Assembly: GCA_011109175.1 (NCBI GenBank) | Contig: RDEW01000012.1 | Location: forward strand, 660,184 to 700,589 | DNA length: 40,406 nucleotides | Source: Dicyema japonicum | Taxonomy: Eukaryota; Animalia; Dicyemida | Reading direction: 5' to 3' | Part shown: in pieces, positions 14,658 to 40,406 of the stretch | Layout of the letters: each line of letters opens with the position of its first letter | How positions within the stretch are numbered: the first letter of the stretch is position 1 | Translations under genes and position numbers: made by a program | The notes under the pieces: model-generated | Database searches by the model: none | What the model was told of the DNA's origin: nothing | Seen by the model: only the letters and a program-made list of their open reading frames with translations

Positions 14658-17041
14658 CAGCGGTTCTCAACCTGGGGTCGATTCGACGCCCAGCTGTCTA
14701 GTATCAATCCAGATCGATTGTAAGGAAATCGAAAATGAAATACTTTGGGGTCGAAAATATATTTAATATTTCTCATTTTAAACTAACTTAGTTTATTTTT
14801 AAACTGGCAAACCTTTGTTCTTTAAAATTTTTAAAATTACCATGCTTGTTTTTGTTCGTGTATGAGTCGTCCTTCTACAATAAAAATTCGTCAATATAAA
14901 AATGAATATTTAAATTTATAAAAAAATTCTTTTGATACTAAACCATATTGCATACTGTGTAATAAGTCATTATCAAATGATGCAATGAAACCGTCTAAAT
15001 TGTTGGATCAATTTATAAAAAAATTCTTTTGATACTAAACCATATTGCTTACTGTGTAATAAGTCATTATCAAATGATGCAATGAAACCGTCTAAATTGT
15101 TGGATCATCTTAGGAGAATACACTCGGATAAAAAAGATAAACCATTAGAGTATTTTGAAAAATTAAAGGATTCTTTTTGTAAACAAAAAACGATTGACAC
15201 TGTTTTTACAAATAGTAATGAAAGAATCAATAGTTGTTGTCATTTTAAATTATATTTAGGAATACTAATTGCATCCTATAAAATTACAATGATTATTGCC
15301 AAAAATGAGAGTTCCCATGTTTCTGGTGAAAATCTCATCAAACATCTATATCAGTGATTCTATCAGATCTGATGGGTTTAAATCTCGACGAAATTTTAAA
15401 ATCCGTACCAATTAGCAATGATTCAATTCGCCCAGGATTGACGAAATGTCTGATAATGTTGAACATATTTTATGTGAAAGGCTTAAAAATAATATTTTTT
15501 TCGCTTTAAATTGACGAAAGTCATATATGTGACAACTAATCAATTCTAATGGGAAATGTCAGGTTAATCTTATTAGAAGCTTTCCCTTTAAGATATTTTG
15601 ACGATCATGCTCTTCCTAAAGAAGCTTTATTATTCGTCAAATATTTGGAAACTGATACGACTGGATTTTCTATTTTTTCCGTAGTCAATTTATTTTTGGA
15701 TGACAAGAAGATTTCATATGTAAATTTGGTTTCTTTTGCCACAGATAGTTGCAATGTCTATGGTTGGAAAATATAAAGGATTTGCGGCATATTTGAAAAA
15801 AATATGTCCAAATGTGATTCATATACATTGCGTTCTACATATACAAAATTTGGTTTCAAAAGCTCTTTCACCAATTCTACATGAAACGTTAAATATAGTT
15901 ATTAAAACCATAAACAAAATTAAAGCAAGTATGATCGTCTTATTAGAAAATGTTGCTATGAGGCTAAAGAAACATATGTCCGTCTTGCGCTTCACACTGA
16001 GGTTATAGTTTCCAATTTTATTTTATAGGTACGATGATTATTAAAGCGGGTTGCATTTGAACGATTTTCAATGTTATTTGATACAATCGTAAATTTTCTT
16101 ATTTCTGAGGGTGATAAAAATTTAGCAGATTTAATTGTATCGAAAAAAAAAGAAATTGTTTATTTTACTTGGATTTTTGGAAAATTTAATGAAGTTTCAT
16201 TATAACTTCAGGGAAAGTATGTGACACGTAAATAGATTGTAAAAGAATTATTCAAATATTCATCGAAAAAATTAAGTTATATAAATATAACTTGAAAAAA
16301 AAGAAATTATTATAACATTCCCGAATTCCACTCAATTGGTCAAACATTTGATGATGAAGATATTAACAACTTTTTGCAACATTTATTACGTGTAGAAAAA
16401 GATTTGATTCTTTGATTCCAAGATATTCTTGAATTTGAAATTTCATTTTAAATGTTTAATCCGTTTTTGTCAAAGCGAGAAGAACAAAAAGAAAATATTA
16501 AAGACGAATTAATTATGCTAAAATTCAATCCAGAATTAAAACTATATTATAATGATACACAATCACCTGTTATTTTTTGGCAAAATATGAAAGTGAAAGA
16601 GAGTTATCCAAAATAGTGGACAGAATTGCTACTCTATTTTCCGACATCATTTTGTGTTGAATGAGGATTTAGCATTTTACATCGAATTGTAAATAAAGAA
16701 CGAAACAGATTGCTGTGTCCATTTGAGGAGATATTCGTTTAAAAATAACACAAATAGAGCCAGATATCGAATCTTTGATAATAAAACATCAGTCACAGGG
16801 ATCCCATTGGTATTTAATTCTTTTTTTATTATAAATTTATGCTAAGATACCAACTTAACATCGAGTATATACTTTTTTTGTTTGATTTGATTATTAACAA
16901 TGAATTCAGTTTAGATAGTTAACTAATTCTACTTAGAATTGTCTGTTCTAAATAAAAAAGTTTTAAATGTCAATTAAATATTAGGGGGGTCGAAAAAATT
17001 AGTCAAGGGGTCGACGAGTAAAAAAAGGTTGAAAACCCCTG
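14658..17041 (+). mobile_element. hAT (Buster/Charlie-type) DNA transposon copy 1, pseudogenised
   Basis: TIRs CAGCGGTTCTCAACCT / AGGTTGAAAACCCCTG with subterminal GGGGTCGA repeats. ATG 14862 gives MSRPSTIKIRQYKNEYL, BED finger CLLCNKSLSNDAMKPSKLLDHL, HIHCVLH and HTE|VR. Candidate introns at 15233-15259, 15563-15592 and 16002-16028. 97-bp tandem duplication at 14913-15107. Confidence 0.93.
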
Positions 17042-17415
17042 GTATACAGAATCAACTCTGTACACCAGAAAACCTATAAGTATGTTTTGCTCACGTAAGG
17101 GATCAACAGTCGACTAACTTGTCATGGAAGCTAAGACCGGTTGTCTTGGTTTTGGATTTCTTCGCGTTTGTGAGGAAATGGAAACCCGCTTCGCATGATA
17201 ATTTCCATTGCAAGAGAAAACGGATTGATGGGAAATTCCTCTCCCCGATCGGATTTCTCTGCAAGATCGAGAAAAGGCTCTTCCGGAAAGTAGAGGGGAC
17301 AATGAAAAATCACAGTCGTCGAATGGCACAATTGATTGCGGGACTGGGATTACATAACTGTTTGACTCTGTTGTCTTTCTTTCTCGGTGTTCCGGGGGTT
17401 CTTAAAATAATTAAA
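17042..17415 (+). mobile_element. Jockey/I-like LINE 3' end (right flank of the hAT insertion)
   Basis: Homologous to 10350-10742 and 35498-35870. Confidence 0.85.
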
Positions 17416-17445
17416 TATATTTTTCATCATAAGTTCCATTAATAA

Positions 17446-18724
17446 TGAAATCGTTAAAACAAAACAAACAATAGTCATATCATCTAACTAATGTATCAAC
17501 TTCTGGTCTCTCCGACCAGGCCAGCACCCACCTGGATTCTTTTCTAAAATTCTTTTCTAAGCCGGACAATTTAAAGTAAGCATTCACATCTTTCATCATG
17601 CATGCCAGTGTCCCTTCCTCTTTTGCCAAAAGTTTCAAATCATCGATGAATAAGAAATGATTCGCAGAAAAAGTAAAAGAATTAGATTCAGCAGTATTGA
17701 TAGACATGCTCGGAATTTTGCAGACAACATTCTGCTTAGTGGATCCAAAACAAATACAAATAATTGAGGTGATAGAGAGTCACCTTGGAGTATTCCACGT
17801 TCAATATTATTCGTTCCCAATATCTTTTTCCCAAATCTTAATGACACACGCCAGGTTGGAATTATTGATATTACAAACTTGGTTATCCATTCTGGTAGTC
17901 CCGAGTTTTCCAGGATTTTAACAAGATACTCGTGAGTCACTGAATCAAACGCTTTTCTAACATCAATCCATGCACAGAATAGTTTGTTTTCATGGGCTTT
18001 GTTAACACCCAATTCCTTTGCTCCTTGACAGTGTCGTTTTGTCCCAAGCTGATACTCAGTAATTAAATCATAAGTTTCAGCATATTGTGCAATTTTTTTG
18101 TTTACACATTTTGTAACCAGCTTGTATAAGCACGGCATACATGTAATCGGTCTAAGATCCTTAGGGTCAACAGAGTTCTTCTTCTTTGGGATTAGTTATG
18201 TAATCCCCGTATAAAACCATCTTTTCGGTTGACTTTTTCCACTAATGATATCTCTGATCTCTTTAAATAAATATTGATAAAGAGAATCCAACTTCTTGAT
18301 AAAGAAGTTATATACGCAATCAACTCCGGGGGCCTTCCAATTTGGGAGGTAGTCAATTAAATTTGGTATAAAATTATCGTTTATATCAGATTCTTGCTGT
18401 TCAACTCCCGTTATTCTCTTGTTCATTCCAAAACTCAAATCATTTTTATCCCTTTTTTCCCAAACCTCTGTCTAAAATTTAAAGCATTCGGATGTGTCAA
18501 AGCCATCAATGCACTCAATGTCAGAATCTGACTTTAGTTTTGTATAGAATGACCTTCTGTTCAACTCAAATGTAATTGACTTGGGCATTAAAATAGTCAT
18601 GAACAGGCAAATCCACACTTTCTCGAACTCCATTTATTAAATATTCTGTGGACGCGTCAATGGGAATGACTTTTTCAGACTGGGAAAAACCAACCATCAT
18701 TACACCACTAGACAATAATCTCTA
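17446..18724 (-). mobile_element. R4/Dong-like non-LTR retrotransposon, internally deleted, with 12-bp imperfect TSD
   Basis: RT motifs NWKAPGVD, LRPITCMPCLYKL, WIDVRKAFDSV, RGILQGDSLSPQLF and NHFLFIDDLKL. Flanked by ttccattaataa (17434-17445) and ttccatcaataa (18725-18736). Empty site at about 35890. Confidence 0.85.
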
Positions 18725-19064
18725 TTCCATCAATAACATTATGATCTTACAATAAACTAGATTATACTTAAAGAATATTTTGAATGTAAAATAAATATAA
18801 AAATTAAAGCCAGCATTAACAAATTATACAAACATTCATATATAAAACCAGCAGCATAAAAGGAATTCATAAACAAATCGTTAACACAATTATTAATATA
18901 TTTTTGTTGCTTTTGAGTTCTTAAATTGGATATACAAGTTAATCAATTAGAATCATGGTCGGACTACTATTACATTAAATGTCTAATTTATTTCTTATTA
19001 TGTCTCCCGGTGTAATAAATAAATGGATTTGTTTTTCTATCACATGACTCTATTGTTGGGAAAC

Positions 19065-19275
19065 CACCTGTGTAGATAGCCTCTATCCTTCCAACCTTGT
19101 TATGACAGCAACTAACGCAGGGTCTGCTTCGGAGAAGGCTGAGACCTTAAAGATGAAAACATACGCATGTCTCGATGGACAATTCATTTTTAATAGTATC
19201 CCGGGAAACGTCTGTCATCGTGGAATTTTAAAGAAAGCATATCATTGATTCTGCTAGACACTATCAGATCGCTCA
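19065..19275 (+). mobile_element. CRE REL-domain remnant (paralog at about 36225-36440)
   Basis: TCVDSLYPSNLVMTATNAGSASEKAETLKMKTYACLDGQFIF matches the WDxTCVD..A..AE..K..KY..L..F.F REL motif. Confidence 0.65.
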
Positions 19276-19716
19276 TTTCGAAGATGAAAAATGATAAAGT
19301 GTTAAAAAATAAATGATAAATTCAAAAAAATTAAACCGCAAAATCGATTATTACAATTAATATATAAGTTGTTCAATTTTGATATCATTGACCTAAGCGA
19401 TCTTAAATAGAGACATTTTAAGGCTTTATGACTGCACACGTCTCGGCGACAACTTATGAAATCTAGTCCGAGACTGTTGTATTTTGTTATTTAAAGTTGT
19501 CGAATACTAGCAATGCCTCTTAAGCATTCAATCGGGAATTTTATAATTTTGAATGCGAAAAGTGTATGCAGATTCCACATTGCAAATCAGATTTTCCAGA
19601 GAGATTAGAAAAACTGTGATCTTGTCTGTGAGCATCAATATTCAGGATATCTGAAAAAGAGTTGAATGTGCAGAATACCTTAACTACTTAAGTAAGAAAA
19701 CAAGAAAAAGCTACTT

Positions 19717-20047
19717 AATAATAATAATAAAGCCTTTTCACGAGAGCCATATTATTTTATAGCTCCGCATAGGCAGGACACACATTTTATTTAAGTAAAG
19801 AACAGTTAATTTTCACTAATCGTAGAACCAAGGAATGATCTTCACTTCTTTTTTTTCTTTTTCTTGTGTGAGTGTCCTTTCTAGACAATCCAGTTCCGCA
19901 GTGAGTATTCACTGATGACGGCGTCACTCGTCAAACCATTTCTGCATCGTAGATGCGTGGAACCTTCCACCAGGTGAACAGCAGCGAGATTCGAACCCGT
20001 AGCCTAAGCCACTTAAGCCCGACACCTAACCACTAAGCCACCCGGCT
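19717..20047 (-). mobile_element. tRNA-derived SINE (Leu-TAA-like head), 331 bp, (ATT)n tail, imperfect 12-bp TSD
   Basis: A-box TGGCTTAGTGG and B-box GGTTCGAATC. Flanks aaaaagctactt / aaaaaattactt. Empty site in the paralog near 36865. Confidence 0.88.
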
Positions 20048-20140
20048 AAAAAATTACTTGGAAGAAAATAATTAATGAAATTATTATGTAACGTGCTTGG
20101 GAGAATTTAAATAAAGAAAAAACAAGAAAATTAATAACAG

Positions 20141-21312
20141 TTAAAGAATAGGGACATATACCATTTGTCTTATCATATTTCGGCGCTTAATAACAAATGC
20201 GACGACTCCGATGATTGTAAATGTTATAACAGTGAGTGTAAGTCCTATAATTATATACATTTTTGAATGATTAGAAAGTGTATTTTTTCTAGGAAAATTT
20301 ATTTCATAACACTTCGACTCTAAATTCAGAAAAAAATCAAACCTTTTCCAATATAACTGAATTTAGAATCATCCTGAAAAATTTGTACCTTAAATTGTGA
20401 AAATTCAGCATATATGTTATCAGAAAATTTAGTGAGAGACAATTCGAATTTACAAGAATTTCCAACATCAATCAATTTGTTATTAGTAGGACTCCAAGAC
20501 CCATTATTGATTTTATTGATGATTAACTGAATTTTGGACATATAATATTTGTTTTGAGACAAAATAAATGTAAAATGTATTTCTAAATATCCCCTCTCAA
20601 GAGATAACTCAACACTATTTTTATCAAAATTAATTTTCGTTTTAAAATTCACGAAAAAAATTGAGAAATCTTTACTCTAATATTAAAGTATACAATTTAC
20701 AATTTCAACTTTGTTATTAAAAAAATTTGTGACTATTAAATGCCCACTTAATATAGCTTTCAGTCGATTTTTCGCAATAAAATACCAATATCGAACATTT
20801 GGATCGTTTGATGGATCACAGTCATGTGCTGAATAAAACTATCTCAAACCTTTTTCAATAAAATGTGAATATGAGAGATTATTGTAAAATTTTATTGCCA
20901 AAGAATATAATGTGAGAATATTACCATTCTCAAAAAATACGGATATATATCCGCATCTGTAATAATCTCCATGTTCAATATGCGGAAGATATGTTGTATT
21001 TGTATAAATTTCATTATCTTTATGTGTTAACTATTAAATACTAGAATTTAATTTTATTTTTATTGAGATGTTGTAAAATTCGTCTGAGAATTCAATAAAA
21101 AATTGGTAGATCAAGTTATTCTTTTTGATTGTAAATGACAATACATCCAAAAAAAAATTGGAAATACTTACAATTGAATTATCGCTTGTCTACCATTATT
21201 ATTTATAAAATACATTTGTAATTGTACTTTTCAATAAACTTTTAAAATCTATTGACGTTCCATAAATAAAGTCGAAATTCGTTATTGAGATCAAAAACAT
21301 TAACAACAACAT
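20141..21312 (-). CDS. LAMP-like type I membrane glycoprotein, 351 aa, six exons (intact copy)
   Basis: Introns at 21190-21213, 21018-21041, 20829-20849, 20677-20700 and 20320-20342, all GT-AG. Spliced length is 1056 nt with no internal stop. Signal-peptide-like start MLLLMFLISITNFDFIYG, several N-x-S/T sequons, GNSCK..FKVQIF..SKC resembling the LAMP domain end, a TM helix, and tail KRRNMIRQMVYVPIL. Confidence 0.8.
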
Positions 21313-21344
21313 AAATATGTAAAATGAACACGTCGATGTGTATA

Positions 21345-21434
21345 ATTACCATGCTTGTTTTTGTTCGTGTATGAGTCGTCCTTCTACAATAAAAATTCGT
21401 CAATATAAAAATGAATATTTAAATTTATAAAAAA
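21345..21434 (+). mobile_element. 90-bp fragment of the hAT copy 1 5' region at a contig junction
   Basis: Matches about 14836-14925, including that copy's specific deletion; followed by N at 21435. Confidence 0.8.
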
Positions 21435-26108: not shown

Positions 26109-26630
26109 TTAATTTTTGCGCATTTTTTTCCGCGACTTTTCCAAATCATTGGCTATTTTCTTGAGTATCTGGATGGACTCCTCGTATATCTTTACGTTGA
26201 CAAAGAAGACGTTGGGTCCCAACCGTTCGTAGATAGCCTCGTGGGAATTGAATTCTGAATTACTGGGCTTCTCGTTGGCCACAACGTAGATTAGGGGAGA
26301 GTCCTTTCTGAGGCTTCGTATCTTCATTTGTAGGTTGTACACGTGTTTGAAGGACCGTTGTTCATGTTGGTCAAACACGAGGATGAATGCGTCCGACTCC
26401 ACAATATTGATCCTCTCCATTGAAGGAAAGAAACAGCTCCCACCTGAGTCGATCACTTTAAGGTTGATTTCTTTCTTTAAAACTCTCATTTTGAGATTGT
26501 AACAGTTCTCTACAGTGGCTTTGTACGGTCTCTCTTGGTGAGGGAACATGATACTCTCTATGAAGGACGTCTTCCCAGTTAGAGGACTACCCATTATACA
26601 CAAACGTATCTGTTTCGGACAGTTCAGCAT
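26109..26630 (-). CDS. Ras-family small GTPase, Di-Ras/Rhes-like, divergent (173 aa, intronless)
   Basis: G1 GSPLTGKT and G2 YKATVEN. The G3 region DSGGSCFFPSMERINIVESDAFILVF resembles Di-Ras [26 protein letters not shown]. G4 and G5 are degenerate. Confidence 0.85.
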   Translation of the reverse strand: MLNCPKQIRLCIMGSPLTGKTSFIESIMFPHQERPYKATVENCYNLKMRVLKKEINLKVIDSGGSCFFPSMERINIVESDAFILVFDQHEQRSFKHVYNLQMKIRSLRKDSPLIYVVANEKPSNSEFNSHEAIYERLGPNVFFVNVKIYEESIQILKKIANDLEKSRKKMRKN

Positions 26631-32491: not shown

Positions 32492-33030
32492 GTACCCCAT
32501 GGGTCTCCACTTTCACCAATTATATTCAACTTATTCCTATACGACCTACCTAATGGTGGAGACGAAGATTCCCTGTTATTATCCTGGCAGACAATGGAGT
32601 CATTGCAAAACGGAACCGTCGACGCAAATAGCAGCCTTAAATACTGAGGCAAAATTGAGCATTCTACACGATTAGATCGTTGGCAATCGACTTACGATTT
32701 CTGCAACCAAGTCTATTTGTACCATTTTCGCTTCGCACCGTCATTCTAAGGAAGAACCGAGCATCTTTATTGGTGCCACTCGGATTACAGTCACAAGGTC
32801 CCCCACTGTCCTTGGAGTCAAGTACGACAGTGTAATCGATTTTAACTCCCAAGCAAAAGATATGATCACCAGGGGCCTCCAGAAAATTAACGTTTTACGC
32901 GCCCTTGTCCGGAGGACCCCGAGGAATATGGACTTTTCTGTTTTACCCTCTGCCAACTAACAATCGCGGCAGCCATTGTGTATGCCTTCGTTGCATGGCG
33001 ATTTGGGCTATCGGAGACTATAGTCTACAG
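32492..33030 (+). mobile_element. Second LINE (RT motifs 4-7 to 3' region), split by the hAT insertion and continuing at 35498-35870
   Basis: VPHGSPLSPIIFNLFLYDLP, then TRSPTVLGVKYDS as in 10126. Continues across the hAT TSD. Confidence 0.85.
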
Positions 33031-35497
33031 CAGGGGTTCTCAACCTGGGGTCGATTCGACCCCCAGGGGTCTAAAATCAATCCAGATCGATCGTAAGGGG
33101 GTCGAAAATATATTTAATCTTTTTCAATTTAAATTAAGTTAGTTTATTTTTAAAGTGGTAAACCTTTGTTCTTTAAAATTTTTAAAATTACCATGCTTGT
33201 TTTTGTTCGTGTATGGTATGAGTCTTTTTTCTACATTAAAAATTCGTCAATATAAAAATGAATATTTGTCATTTGGATTTATAAAAAAATTATTTTAATT
33301 AAACTGTCCAAATTGTTGGATCATCTTAGGAGAAAACATTCTGATAAAAAAGATAAACCATTATTTTGAAGAATTAAAGGATTCTTTTCGTAAACAAAAA
33401 AAACGATTGACACTGTTTTTACAAATATTAGTGAAAGAAACAATAGTCGTATTTATTTTAAATTATATTTAGGAGGACTAATTGCATCCTATAAAATTGC
33501 AATGATTATTGCCAAAAATGAGAGTTCCCATGTTTCTGGTGAAAATCTAATCAAACCATCTATCAGTGATTCTATCAGATCTTATGGGTTTAAATCTTGA
33601 CGAAATTTTAAAATCCGTACCAATTAGCAATGATTCAATTCGCCGCAGGATTGACGAAATGGCAGATAATGTTGAACATATTTTATGTGAAAGGCTTAAA
33701 AATACTATTTTTTCGCTTCAAATTGACGAAAGTCATATATGTCTAATGGGATATGTCAACCAATCAATTCTAATGGGATATGTCAGGTTAATCTTATTAG
33801 AAGCTTACCCCTTAAGATATTTTGAAGATCATGCTCTTCTTACTGATAAGACTGAATTTTCTATTTTTTCCGTAGTCAAATTATTTTTGGATGACATGAA
33901 GATTCCATATGTAAATTTGGTTTCTTGTGCCACAGATGGCAATGTCTATGGTTGGAAAATATAAAGGATTTGCGCCATATTTGAAAAAAAATATGTCCAA
34001 ATGTGATTCATGTACATTGCGTTCTACATAGATAACATTTGGTTTCAAAAGCTCTTTCGCCAATTCTACATGAAACGTTAAATATAGTTATTAAAACCAT
34101 AAACAAAATTAAAGCAAACAGCAAGTATGACCGTCTATTTAAAAAATTTTGCTATGAGGCTAAAGAAACATATGTCCGTCTTGTGCTTCACACTGAGGTT
34201 ATAGTTTCCAATTTTATCATAAACAAAATTAAAGCAAACAGCAAGTATGACCGTCTATTTAAAAAATTTTGCTATGAGGCTAAAGAAACATATGTCCGTC
34301 TTGTGCTTCACACTGAGGTTATAGTTTCCAATTTTATTTTACAGATACGATGGTTATCAAAGGGAATTCCATTAGAACGATTTTCAATATTATTTGACAC
34401 AATCGTAAATTTTCTTACTTCTGATAGTGAGAAAAATTTAGCAGATTTAATTGTATCGAAAAAGAAAGAAATTGTTTATTTGACTTGGATTTTTGGAAAA
34501 TTTAATAAAGTTCATTAGAACTTCAGAGAAAGTATGTGACGTTAATAGATTGTAAAAGAATTATTCAAATATTTATCGAAAAAATTAAGTTGCATAAATA
34601 TATGGAAAATTTAATAAAGTTCATTAGAACTTCAGGGAAAGTATGTGGCGTTAATAGATTGTAAAAGAATTATTCAAATATTTATCGAAAAAATTAAGTT
34701 ATATAAATATATTTTGAAAAAAAGAAATTATTATAACATTCCCGAATTCTACTCAATTGGTCAAACATTTGATGATGAAGATATTAAAAATTTTTTGCAA
34801 CATTTATTAAGTATAGAAAGATTTGATTCTTCGATTCCAAGATATTCTTGAATTAGAAATTCCATCTTGGATGATTAATCCGTTTTTGTCAAAGCCAGAA
34901 GAGCATAAAGAAATTATTAAATAGGAATTAGTTATGTTAAAATTCAATCCAGAATTAAAACTATATTATAATGATTCACAATCACCTTTTATTTTTTGGC
35001 AAAATATGAAAGTGAAAGAGAGTTATCCAAAATTGTGGACAGAAATAGCACAATTGCTACTCTATTTTCCGACATTATACTGTGTTGAATGCGGATTTAG
35101 CATTCTACATCGAATTGTAAATAAAGAACGAAACAGATTGGATGTGTCCATTAGAGGAGATCTTCGTTTTAAAATAACACAAATAGAGCCAGATATCGAA
35201 TCAGCGGTCAAAAAACATCAGTCATAGGGATCCCATTGTTCTTTAATTTTTTTATTATATATTTATACTAAGATAAATCTATAACATCGAGTATATACTT
35301 TTTTTGTTTTATTTGATTATTAACAATGAATCCATTTTAGATAGTTAACTAATTTTACTTAGAATTATCTGTTAAATTAATTAATTTTACTTAAAATTAT
35401 CTGTTCAAAATAAAAAAGTTTTAAGGGGTCGAGTAAATATTAGGGGGGTCGAAAAAAAAGTCAAGGNCGACGAGTAAAAAAAGCTTGAGAACCCCTG
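33031..35497 (+). mobile_element. hAT (Buster/Charlie-type) transposon copy 2 with perfect 8-bp TSD, pseudogenised
   Basis: TIR CAGGGGTTCTCAACCT / AAGCTTGAGAACCCCTG; TSD GTCTACAG (33023-33030 and 35498-35505, central TA). HTE|IRWLSKG and FPTLYCVECGFS motifs. Candidate introns at 33446-33472, 33787-33816 and 34318-34344. Tandem duplications of 120 bp (34098) and 109 bp (34494). Confidence 0.95.
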
Positions 35498-35870
35498 GTC
35501 TACAGAATCAACTCTGTACACCAGAAAACCTATAAGTATGCTTTGCTCACCTAATGGATCAACAGTCGACTCACTTGTCATGTAAGCTAAGACCCGTTGT
35601 CTTGGTTTTGGATTTCTTCGCGTTTGTGAGGAAATGGAAACCCGCTTCGCATGATAATTTCCATTGTAAGAGAAAACGGATTGATGGGAAATTCCTCTCA
35701 CCGATCGGATTTCTCTGCAAGATCGAGAAAAGGCTCTTCCAGAAAGTAGTGGGGACAATGAAAAATCACAGATGTCGAATGGCACAATTGATTGCGGGGA
35801 CTGGGATCACATAACTGTTTGACTCGGTTGTCTTTCTTTCTCGGTGTTCCGGGGGTTCTTAAAATAATTA
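35498..35870 (+). mobile_element. 3' end of the LINE split by the hAT
   Basis: Homologous to 10350-10742 and 17042-17415. Confidence 0.85.
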
Positions 35871-36958
35871 AATATAAATTTCATCATAAGTTCCATCAAT
35901 CACATTATGATCTAACAATAAACTAAATTATACTTAAAGAATATTTTGAATGTAAAATAAATATAAAAATTAAAGCCAGCATTAACAAATTATACAAACA
36001 TCATATATAAAACCAGCAGCATAAAAGGAATTCATACACAAATCGTTAACACAATTATTAATATATTTTTGTTGCTTTTGAGTTCTTAAATTGGATATAC
36101 AAGTTACTCAATTCGATTCATGGTCGGGCTGCTATTACATTAAATGTCTAATTAATTTCATATTATGTCTCCCGGTGTAATAAATAAATGGATTTGTTTT
36201 TCTATCACATGAGTCTATTGTTGAGAAACCACCTGTGTAGATAGCCTCTCTCCTTCCAACCTTGTTATGACAGCGACTAACCCAGGGTCTGCTTCGAGAA
36301 GGCTGAGACCCTAAAGGTGAAAACATACGCATCTCTCGATGGACAATTCATTTTTTAATAGTATCCCTGGAAACGTCTGTCATCGTGGAATTTTAAAGAA
36401 AGCATGTCATTGATTCTGCTAGACACAATCAGATTGCTCATTGCGAAGATGAAAAATGATAAGGAGTTAAAAAATAAATGATAAATTCAAAATCATTATA
36501 CTGCAAAATCGATTGTTACAATTAATATAAAAGTTGCTCAATTTTGATATCATTGAGCTAAGCGATCTTAAAGATAGACCTTTTAAGGCCTTATGACTGC
36601 ACACGTCTCGGCGACAACTTATGAAATCTAGTCAGAGGGTGATGTATTTTGTTATTTAAAGCGAATACTAGCAATGCCTCTTAAGCATTCAATCAGGAAT
36701 CTTATAATTTTGAATGCAAAAAGTGTATGCAGATTTCACATTGCGAATCAGATTTTCCAGAGAGATTAGAAAAACTGTGATCTTTTCTGTGAGTATCAAT
36801 ATTCAGGATATCTGAAAAAGAGTTGAATGTGCAGAATACCTTAACTACTTAAGTGAGAAAACAAGAAAAAGCTACTTGGATAAAAATAATTAATGAAATT
36901 AGTATGTAGCGTGCTTGGGAGAATTTAAATAGAGAAAAAATGAGAAAATTAATAACAG

Positions 36959-39834: not shown

Positions 39835-40406
39835 CAGAGCTTTTCAAAAAATAATTCTCGCGGCACACTAATCGTAAAAAAAATCCACGGCAAACATTAA
39901 AAAATAAAAAATTAAATTTTTAAGAAGTGCAAAACTAAAATTGGAAATTTAATGCCCAAATTTTTATTAATATAAAAATGAAATCTTAATTATTATAGTT
40001 TTGCATATATCATCAATATCAGGTCGAATAATTGACAAAGCCACCCGCATTTCAGCATCAATGTTTCTCAAACTTTCATGTTTGTTATATTTCATATTAT
40101 GCATCGTAGAAAAACCTGTTTCGCATAAATAGGTCGTTGAAAACTGTAAAATTATGGTCAGTGCTTGTTTTGATAAACTGGGATATATGTTTCGAATATA
40201 TAGAGAATTCTCCAATGTCTGACTCCGTCATCATTAATTTTAAGGATCGATCATTAAACAGTGCAATAAGTTCTACATTTTCTTTAACGAATAAGTGTTT
40301 TGATTCTGACACAAGAAAAGGATTTCGTATCTAAAAAATATTTAAAAAATAATAACCCAATCGAATTTTTCAATTTCTAAGTCTGGAAAATAAGCATCAA
40401 TTTTGT
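39835..40406 (-). mobile_element. Second hAT/Buster family, 3' end (runs off the window)
   Basis: TIR cagagcttttcaaa..tcgcggcacact with flank gtataagg (central TA). C-terminal dimerisation motif YPSLSKQALTIILQFSTTYLCETGFS. The W|IRNPF motif is split by a 26-nt intron (40331-40356). Confidence 0.88.

Follow-up and report, generated by a model that had tools for sequence, protein, structure and literature searches.

Three putative micro-introns in the transposase gene of a decayed Buster-group hAT transposon of Dicyema japonicum

The transposase gene of a decayed Buster-group hAT transposon of Dicyema japonicum is interrupted by three short blocks that are probably micro-introns of the host's own class, gained on the lineage of this transposon family. 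The gene would have comprised about 598 codons encoding a BED finger, an RNase-H-like DDE core and a putative hAT dimerisation domain. In the history proposed here, three spliceosomal micro-introns (27 nt in phase 1, 30 nt in phase 2 and 27 nt in phase 0) would have been inserted into this ancestrally intron-free gene on the lineage leading to the D. japonicum family, would have become fixed in a master copy before its amplification to at least 60 copies, and would have had to be spliced out for transposase to be synthesized. The published D. japonicum assembly comprises 377 scaffolds that total 67.5 Mb, 49% of it repeats (PMC6736024), and its bases were counted here as 67,542,437 in 377 contigs. 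Two copies of the element, A and B, lie within the window, the whole stretch of 40,406 nt that was analyzed, and their features are as follows.

14658..17041, plus strand: copy A of the Buster-type hAT element, a pseudogene of 2384 bp
15034..15126, plus strand: region of copy A coding for the BED-type zinc finger (PF02892, 21.7 bits; cut-off 20.6)
15233..15259, plus strand: putative intron 1 of copy A, 27 nt
15563..15592, plus strand: putative intron 2 of copy A, 30 nt
16002..16028, plus strand: putative intron 3 of copy A, 27 nt; closes with TTA TAG, which places a stop in frame, and GTA (Val) follows
17443-18725: insertion of 1.28 kb splitting the right flank, copy A only, containing a reverse transcriptase (RT) fragment
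33023..33030, no strand: left 8-bp target-site duplication of copy B, GTCTACAG, which fits nnnTAnnn
33031..35497, plus strand: copy B of the same Buster-type hAT element, a pseudogene of 2467 bp
33446..33472, plus strand: putative intron 1 of copy B, 27 nt, GT..AG, phase 1, 85% A+T, just before GLIASY
33787..33816, plus strand: putative intron 2 of copy B, 30 nt, GT..AG, phase 2, inside GYVR|YF
34098..34337, plus strand: exact 120-nt tandem duplication private to copy B, with its junction inside intron 3
34318..34344, plus strand: putative intron 3 of copy B, 27 nt, GT..CAG, phase 0, inside HTE|(V/I)RWLSKG
34494..34712, plus strand: tandem duplication of about 110 nt seen in copy B alone
34973..35149, plus strand: region of copy B coding for a putative hAT C-terminal dimerisation domain, with its CVECGFS motif (PF05699, 16.9 bits, below the cut-off)
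35498-35505: right 8-bp target-site duplication of copy B, GTCTACAG, identical to the left one
35498..36890, no strand: right flank common to copies A and B, matching 17042-17443 plus 18725-19728 near copy A

Both copies are bordered by terminal inverted repeats of the CAG(G/C)GGTTCTCAACC type, which in copy B read CAGGGGTTCTCAACC ... GCTTGAGAACCCCTG, and both are dead, inert pseudogenes. Copy B is 96.5% identical to the majority sequence of the family and carries 8 frameshifting indels, two deletions and the two tandem duplications, the 120-nt one of which left a truncated extra intron start at 34198. Copy A matches the majority sequence at 95.8% identity and has 14 frameshifting indels, and the two copies are about 90% identical to each other with many private indels. 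The target duplication of copy A has decayed to GTCTAGTG / GTATACAG, and the identity of the two right flanks extends for more than 1.4 kb. Because they have this target duplication and this flank in common, copies A and B are a single insertion that was duplicated later together with its surroundings. The initial annotation had pointed to the identical positions of the blocks in both copies; the positions are true, but the agreement between these two pseudogenes is not independent evidence, since both descend from one insertion. It had also taken the retroelement coding fragments of the window as an internal control free of such blocks, and a spot check of one of them bears this out for that fragment: the RT fragment at 17638-18138 on the minus strand (RVT_1 match, E=2e-14, 167 aa) is uninterrupted.

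Further features lie elsewhere in the window. A 99-nt fragment at window positions 21336-21434, situated within another repeat unit, matches the 5' portion of the hAT element, where the transposase starts, at 97% identity. Positions 40000-40206 on the minus strand encode the C-terminal end of another hAT transposase, a distant one with 28% identity to this family, which runs past the end of the window. A 173-aa open frame at 26112-26630 on the minus strand contains a Ras-family GTPase domain (E=4e-13) and is possibly an exon-rich host gene. No host gene that could serve as a splicing control was confirmed within 6 kb of the element.

By its target sites and its transposase sequence, the element is a Buster-group hAT transposon, as the initial annotation had recognized. 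A preference for nnnTAnnn targets defines this group (Arensburger et al. 2011, as cited in PMC3942097). Perfect 8-bp target duplications occur in ten copies of the family, differ between copies and all fit nnnTAnnn with TA at positions 4-5 (among them atcTAgcc, gtcTAgac, ctaTAaat, ctcTAgac, ctgTAaag, gttTAgag, ctcTAagc and agtTAggc); the variety of these duplications further indicates that the family really transposed. The transposase has 1786 relatives, the nearest named ones being SCAND3-like, ZBED5-like, ZBED8 and FAM200C-like proteins, and precomputed annotations of the relatives carry the FAM200-ZBED5 RNase-like (PF27073) and FAM200-GTF2IRD2-like (PF27046) domains. The BED finger (PF02892) exceeded its cut-off in the piece from copy A and reached 17.1 bits in L035. 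Scores for the dimerisation domain (PF05699; 16.9 and 18.7 bits) fall under the cut-off of 21.4, and alignment of this region with relatives is good, the CxECxFS motif included. The motifs QIDES, CATDGA, HTE-VRWLS and CVECGFS are conserved in an alignment with 15 relatives, and the catalytic residues of the DDE core are presumed from what is known of Hermes; a sequence search of solved structures returned nothing relevant. The Buster group (TcBuster, AeBuster1; ZBED5, ZBED8, SCAND3/ZBED9, FAM200) has the same 8-bp nnnTAnnn target duplications as the D. japonicum family. A BED finger, the DDE core motifs and a C-terminal ...QGSH are likewise common to Buster-group relatives and the family, and its short CAG...CTG terminal repeats are of the same type as those of the relatives L073 and L075. 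Unlike the Buster relatives checked, which are single uninterrupted ORFs in DNA, the D. japonicum family contains three putative introns of 27-30 nt, and it differs from them also in being AT-rich and, as far as seen, extinct.

The blocks of 27, 30 and 27 nt described in the initial annotation were located exactly at the coordinates it gave in both copies. All six (three per copy) begin with GT and end with AG, and they contain 67-85% A+T. Putative introns 2 and 3 are located at AG|R sites, and, as had also been claimed, they split the motifs GYVR|YF and HTE|(V/I)RWLSKG, which 15 relatives carry without interruption. By the estimate made here, GT and AG ends would arise by chance at the given base composition with a probability of about 0.003 per block and less than 1e-5 for three, a figure that includes a few registers of slide. 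The three blocks resemble neither one another nor other parts of the element, and an origin by internal duplication was rejected on these grounds. With regard to the mechanism of gain, neither a duplication signature nor a donor sequence was detected for the three blocks.

A DNA search of the D. japonicum genome recovered 134 matching pieces of the element, and 38 copies beyond A and B were sampled, giving 40 copies studied. The family comprises at least 60 copies, many of them internally deleted, and the element measures 2.27 kb between the termini CAGGGGTTCTCAACC / GGTTGAGAACCCCTG. Every aligned copy that covers a site has the block there (27/27, 27/27 and 31/31 for sites 1, 2 and 3), and both GT and AG are retained in 23/27 copies at block 1, 27/27 at block 2 and 28/31 at block 3. 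The initial annotation had proposed a survey for intron presence/absence polymorphism within the family, and none emerged: in addition to this uniform presence, words spanning the spliced junctions (with up to 2 mismatches) gave no match to a block-free family copy in the assembly. The lone match to these words was a distant hAT (28% identity) on contig C346 with an unbroken HTEVRWLS.

This distant hAT on C346 (L072, C346:152452-155473), a decayed copy, reads uninterrupted LLLHTEVRWLSK, and thus not every hAT family of this genome has an intron at position 3. Across the genome, the sequences of blocks 1, 2 and 3 were counted 61, 38 and 41 times, respectively. A reading of the blocks as mobile micro-introners was rejected, as most of these occurrences lie together on one contig, spaced as in the element itself, and so as parts of it; a number of intron-1 matches stand alone.

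Divergence from the majority sequence amounts to 3.8% in exons and 4.0% in blocks and is equal across codon positions, a pattern of neutral decay after insertion. None of the 40 copies studied is intact; all are frameshifted, the full-length ones with at least 7 frameshifts each, and the family looks extinct now. Because the family is dead, splicing of its blocks can no longer be tied to function. Several loci (L043, L044, L049, L050 and others) form a subfamily with a common 257-nt deletion starting a few bases before intron 1, and in further copies a distance of only about 296 nt separates introns 1 and 3, both retained; the presence of such deletions in several loci indicates that non-autonomous derivatives also spread. 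Several HSP70 genes of the assembly (C57:749396-751033, C46:605131-606976 and C74:20623-21590) change frame within invariant motifs, for example GIPPAP / RGVPQIEV, at sites without intron-like sequence, which suggests 1-nt indel errors in the assembly. Since these genes carry such frameshifts as well, part of the frameshift load of the transposon may be assembly error.

An internally deleted copy of the family (L071) was also found in the assembly of Octopus sinensis, the host of the parasite, at positions 268763-277137 of the 519-kb contig VCDQ01002078.1 (GCA_006345805.1). Its main pieces are 91-96% identical in DNA, it retains intron 1 (27 nt, GT..AG) and the 3' terminal repeat, and the sequence on either side of it resembles other repeat families of D. 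japonicum, at 74-86% identity. Either this is dicyemid DNA assembled into the octopus genome, or the transposon is shared between parasite and host.

In an alignment with 15 full-length relatives, gaps fall exactly at the three blocks (a gap of 9 columns at block 1), with no other insertion, and these relatives read ...GLxASY, YVR(Y/F) and HTEVRWLS straight through. With the blocks removed, the majority translation is colinear with relatives over about 590 residues, at 54% identity with 7 gap positions to P0164, 49% with 7 to P0016, 45% with 8 to P0179, 43% with 6 to P0187 and 43% with 18 to P0272. The initial annotation had named homologs from other species with the same insertions of 9-10 aa, together with a lack of spliced reads, as evidence that would speak against introns, and none of the aligned relatives has these insertions. 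More specifically, the genes of P0164, P0187, P0272 and P0179 have a length of 3 x (residues + 1) and are therefore single ORFs in DNA; they are located on one metagenomic scaffold, two large contigs from ENA and a scorpion contig of 4 Mb. P0016 is likewise uninterrupted, on a 2.1-kb contig from a sequencing run without a recorded type, and the decayed relative L070, on a 969-kb contig, runs without a break through each of the three sites. A maximum-likelihood tree was built from 27 proteins, none of them a reference TcBuster or AeBuster sequence, with a midpoint root for drawing only; in it, P0164 is the sister of the D. japonicum family (support 99/96), P0016 joins next (100/97), and the clade around the family holds the other verified intron-free genes.

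Because the family is nested among relatives with uninterrupted ORFs in their DNA, intron gain on the branch leading to it is the parsimonious reading, with the fewest events, and the transposon lineage very probably gained its introns. It is very unlikely that the introns were instead already present in the ancestor of this part of the Buster clade, disappeared from the relatives (by way of reverse-transcribed copies, for instance) and then shrank to host size in the dicyemid. Such a course would be in keeping with the long branch to the sister lineage and with the commonness of intron loss in transposase genes (CACTA elements, PMC4158355), but five bracketing relatives, sister P0164 included, are uninterrupted in DNA and L070 has no break at any of the three sites; all three introns would have to have been lost several times independently, as against gains on one branch. 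The ultra-short size of the blocks would place their gain, or at least their shaping, in a micro-intron host and thus presumably within the dicyemid lineage. The gain is only loosely bounded in place and time, and poorly dated, owing to the long branch from the sister lineage (54% identity). Thus, of the earlier proposal that Buster transposases are single ORFs and that these introns were gained after the element colonized this genome, the first part is supported by five relatives and the gain by the nesting of the family, while its placement within dicyemids is a matter of inference.

The blocks themselves resemble the introns of their host. Among animals, introns of less than 30 bp are found outside myxozoans only in D. 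japonicum (2026 survey, PMC13644364). Six introns in HSP70-family genes of the D. japonicum genome measure 22, 23, about 25, 26, 26 and 54 nt, start with GT and mostly end in a run of T followed by AG, and the transposon blocks have the same T-rich 3' end. In length, ends and general look, therefore, the putative introns fit the host's micro-intron class.

Evidence of another kind lies in the reading frame. The majority sequence of the family forms one long frame of about 626 codons with two in-frame stops, one of which falls where the alignment is poor and the actual copies are open. The other is the TAG closing block 3, which is followed by Val as in relatives. Block 3 ends in this in-frame TAG in copy A and about two thirds of the family, and copy B has a derived stop-free form, CAG|ATA. 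As the commonest form, and one followed by the residue of the relatives, the TAG-ending block 3 is probably the ancestral state. A stop at this point would truncate the product of an unspliced message, so that splicing would have been needed for transposase production. The initial annotation had described all three blocks as multiples of three in length and stop-free, and hence as invisible to nonsense-mediated decay. The lengths are as described and blocks 1 and 2 are stop-free in every copy, but block 3 is so only in the subfamily of copy B, and the corollary fails for the majority, ancestral-looking form of intron 3. Given their GT..AG ends, their host-like size and composition, the in-frame stop and the colinearity restored on their removal, the reading of the blocks as putative introns, spliced in the past if not at present, appears much the best.

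It is very unlikely, by comparison, that the blocks are translated coding insertions of 9-10 residues each that were never spliced and whose GT..AG ends are coincidental. All lengths being multiples of three and blocks 1 and 2 free of stops, read-through translation of these two blocks may occur, and copy B, in whose subfamily block 3 is open as well, reads in frame through all three (ERNN|SRIYFKLYL|GGLIA, MGYVR|LILLEAYPLR|YFED and HTE|VIVSNFILQ|IRW). Four sequencing runs from one 2019 study, none on record as RNA, consist of short contigs whose depth tracks repeat copy number; run contigs were mapped to window positions 15100-20999 (copy A and its flank) at 88% likeness. Among the joints listed, none falls at an intron border, and joints of the deletion subfamilies (skips of 255 and 35) are present; these runs behave like DNA and weigh neither for nor against splicing. 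Against coding insertions stand the in-frame TAG of the majority, ancestral-looking block 3, the GT..AG ends and host-like T-rich 3' end of all three blocks, the low chance (less than 1e-5 by the estimate given above) of three such insertions, and the positions of the blocks within motifs invariant in 15 relatives, including HTE|VRW of the catalytic core.

Just as improbable is a master copy that was already non-autonomous, in which the blocks were junk inserted into a gene no longer alive and which a different hAT family provided with transposase in trans: every copy seen is broken, many are internally deleted derivatives and other hAT families exist in the genome, but the majority sequence without its blocks is a full-length open frame, bar the one poorly aligned spot that is open in real copies, which shows that the gene was intact while the blocks were already present, and three junk insertions would not all be multiples of three with GT..AG ends.

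Putative introns in this Buster family have counterparts in other transposons. The hAT transposases of Ac and Tol2 contain introns. Intron retention is also known from the P element, in which retention of the third intron yields an altered protein. Similarly, introns 1 and 2 of the D. japonicum family, being stop-free and multiples of three, would give an in-frame variant if retained; in contrast, the majority form of its intron 3 would truncate the protein. In BuT2 the hAT transposase gene is divided into five exons (PMC3942097), and CACTA transposases show documented turnover of introns (PMC4158355). The D. japonicum family is like BuT2, Ac and Tol2 in that a hAT transposase gene is split by spliceosomal introns, here putative ones. 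These three elements belong to other hAT groups (Ac, Tip), whereas the D. japonicum family belongs to Buster, and their introns are of ordinary size, about 60-150 nt in BuT2, whereas those proposed here are of the host's ultra-short class. Introners are transposons that create introns (PMC9860276, PMC12130899). Both they and the D. japonicum family link recent intron gain to mobile DNA; in the latter the relationship is reversed, and the gene of the transposon receives the introns. No paper on transposases of D. japonicum was found in the literature.

Clear gains of spliceosomal introns are rare in animals, and their mechanism is debated. In this family the ancestral intron-free state is documented in the DNA of several relatives, and the derived state with three putative introns is fixed in a datable repeat family. 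Leaving myxozoans aside, no animal is known to have shorter introns than this host. If the blocks are indeed spliced, an insert of 27-30 nt with minimal signals suffices as a working intron in the D. japonicum genome, and the splicing regime of a host can shape a selfish gene or be one to which the gene adapts. The stop-free introns 1 and 2 would also allow, as a possibility, retention isoforms that modulate transposition. Transposon finders based on ORFs would call such elements broken even when intact. A wider proposition, possible but doubtful at present, is that D. japonicum makes new micro-introns at an unusually high rate and that its DNA transposons record them; if true, transposon families with datable copy divergence and intron-free relatives would provide both a clock and a before-and-after picture of intron birth in an animal.
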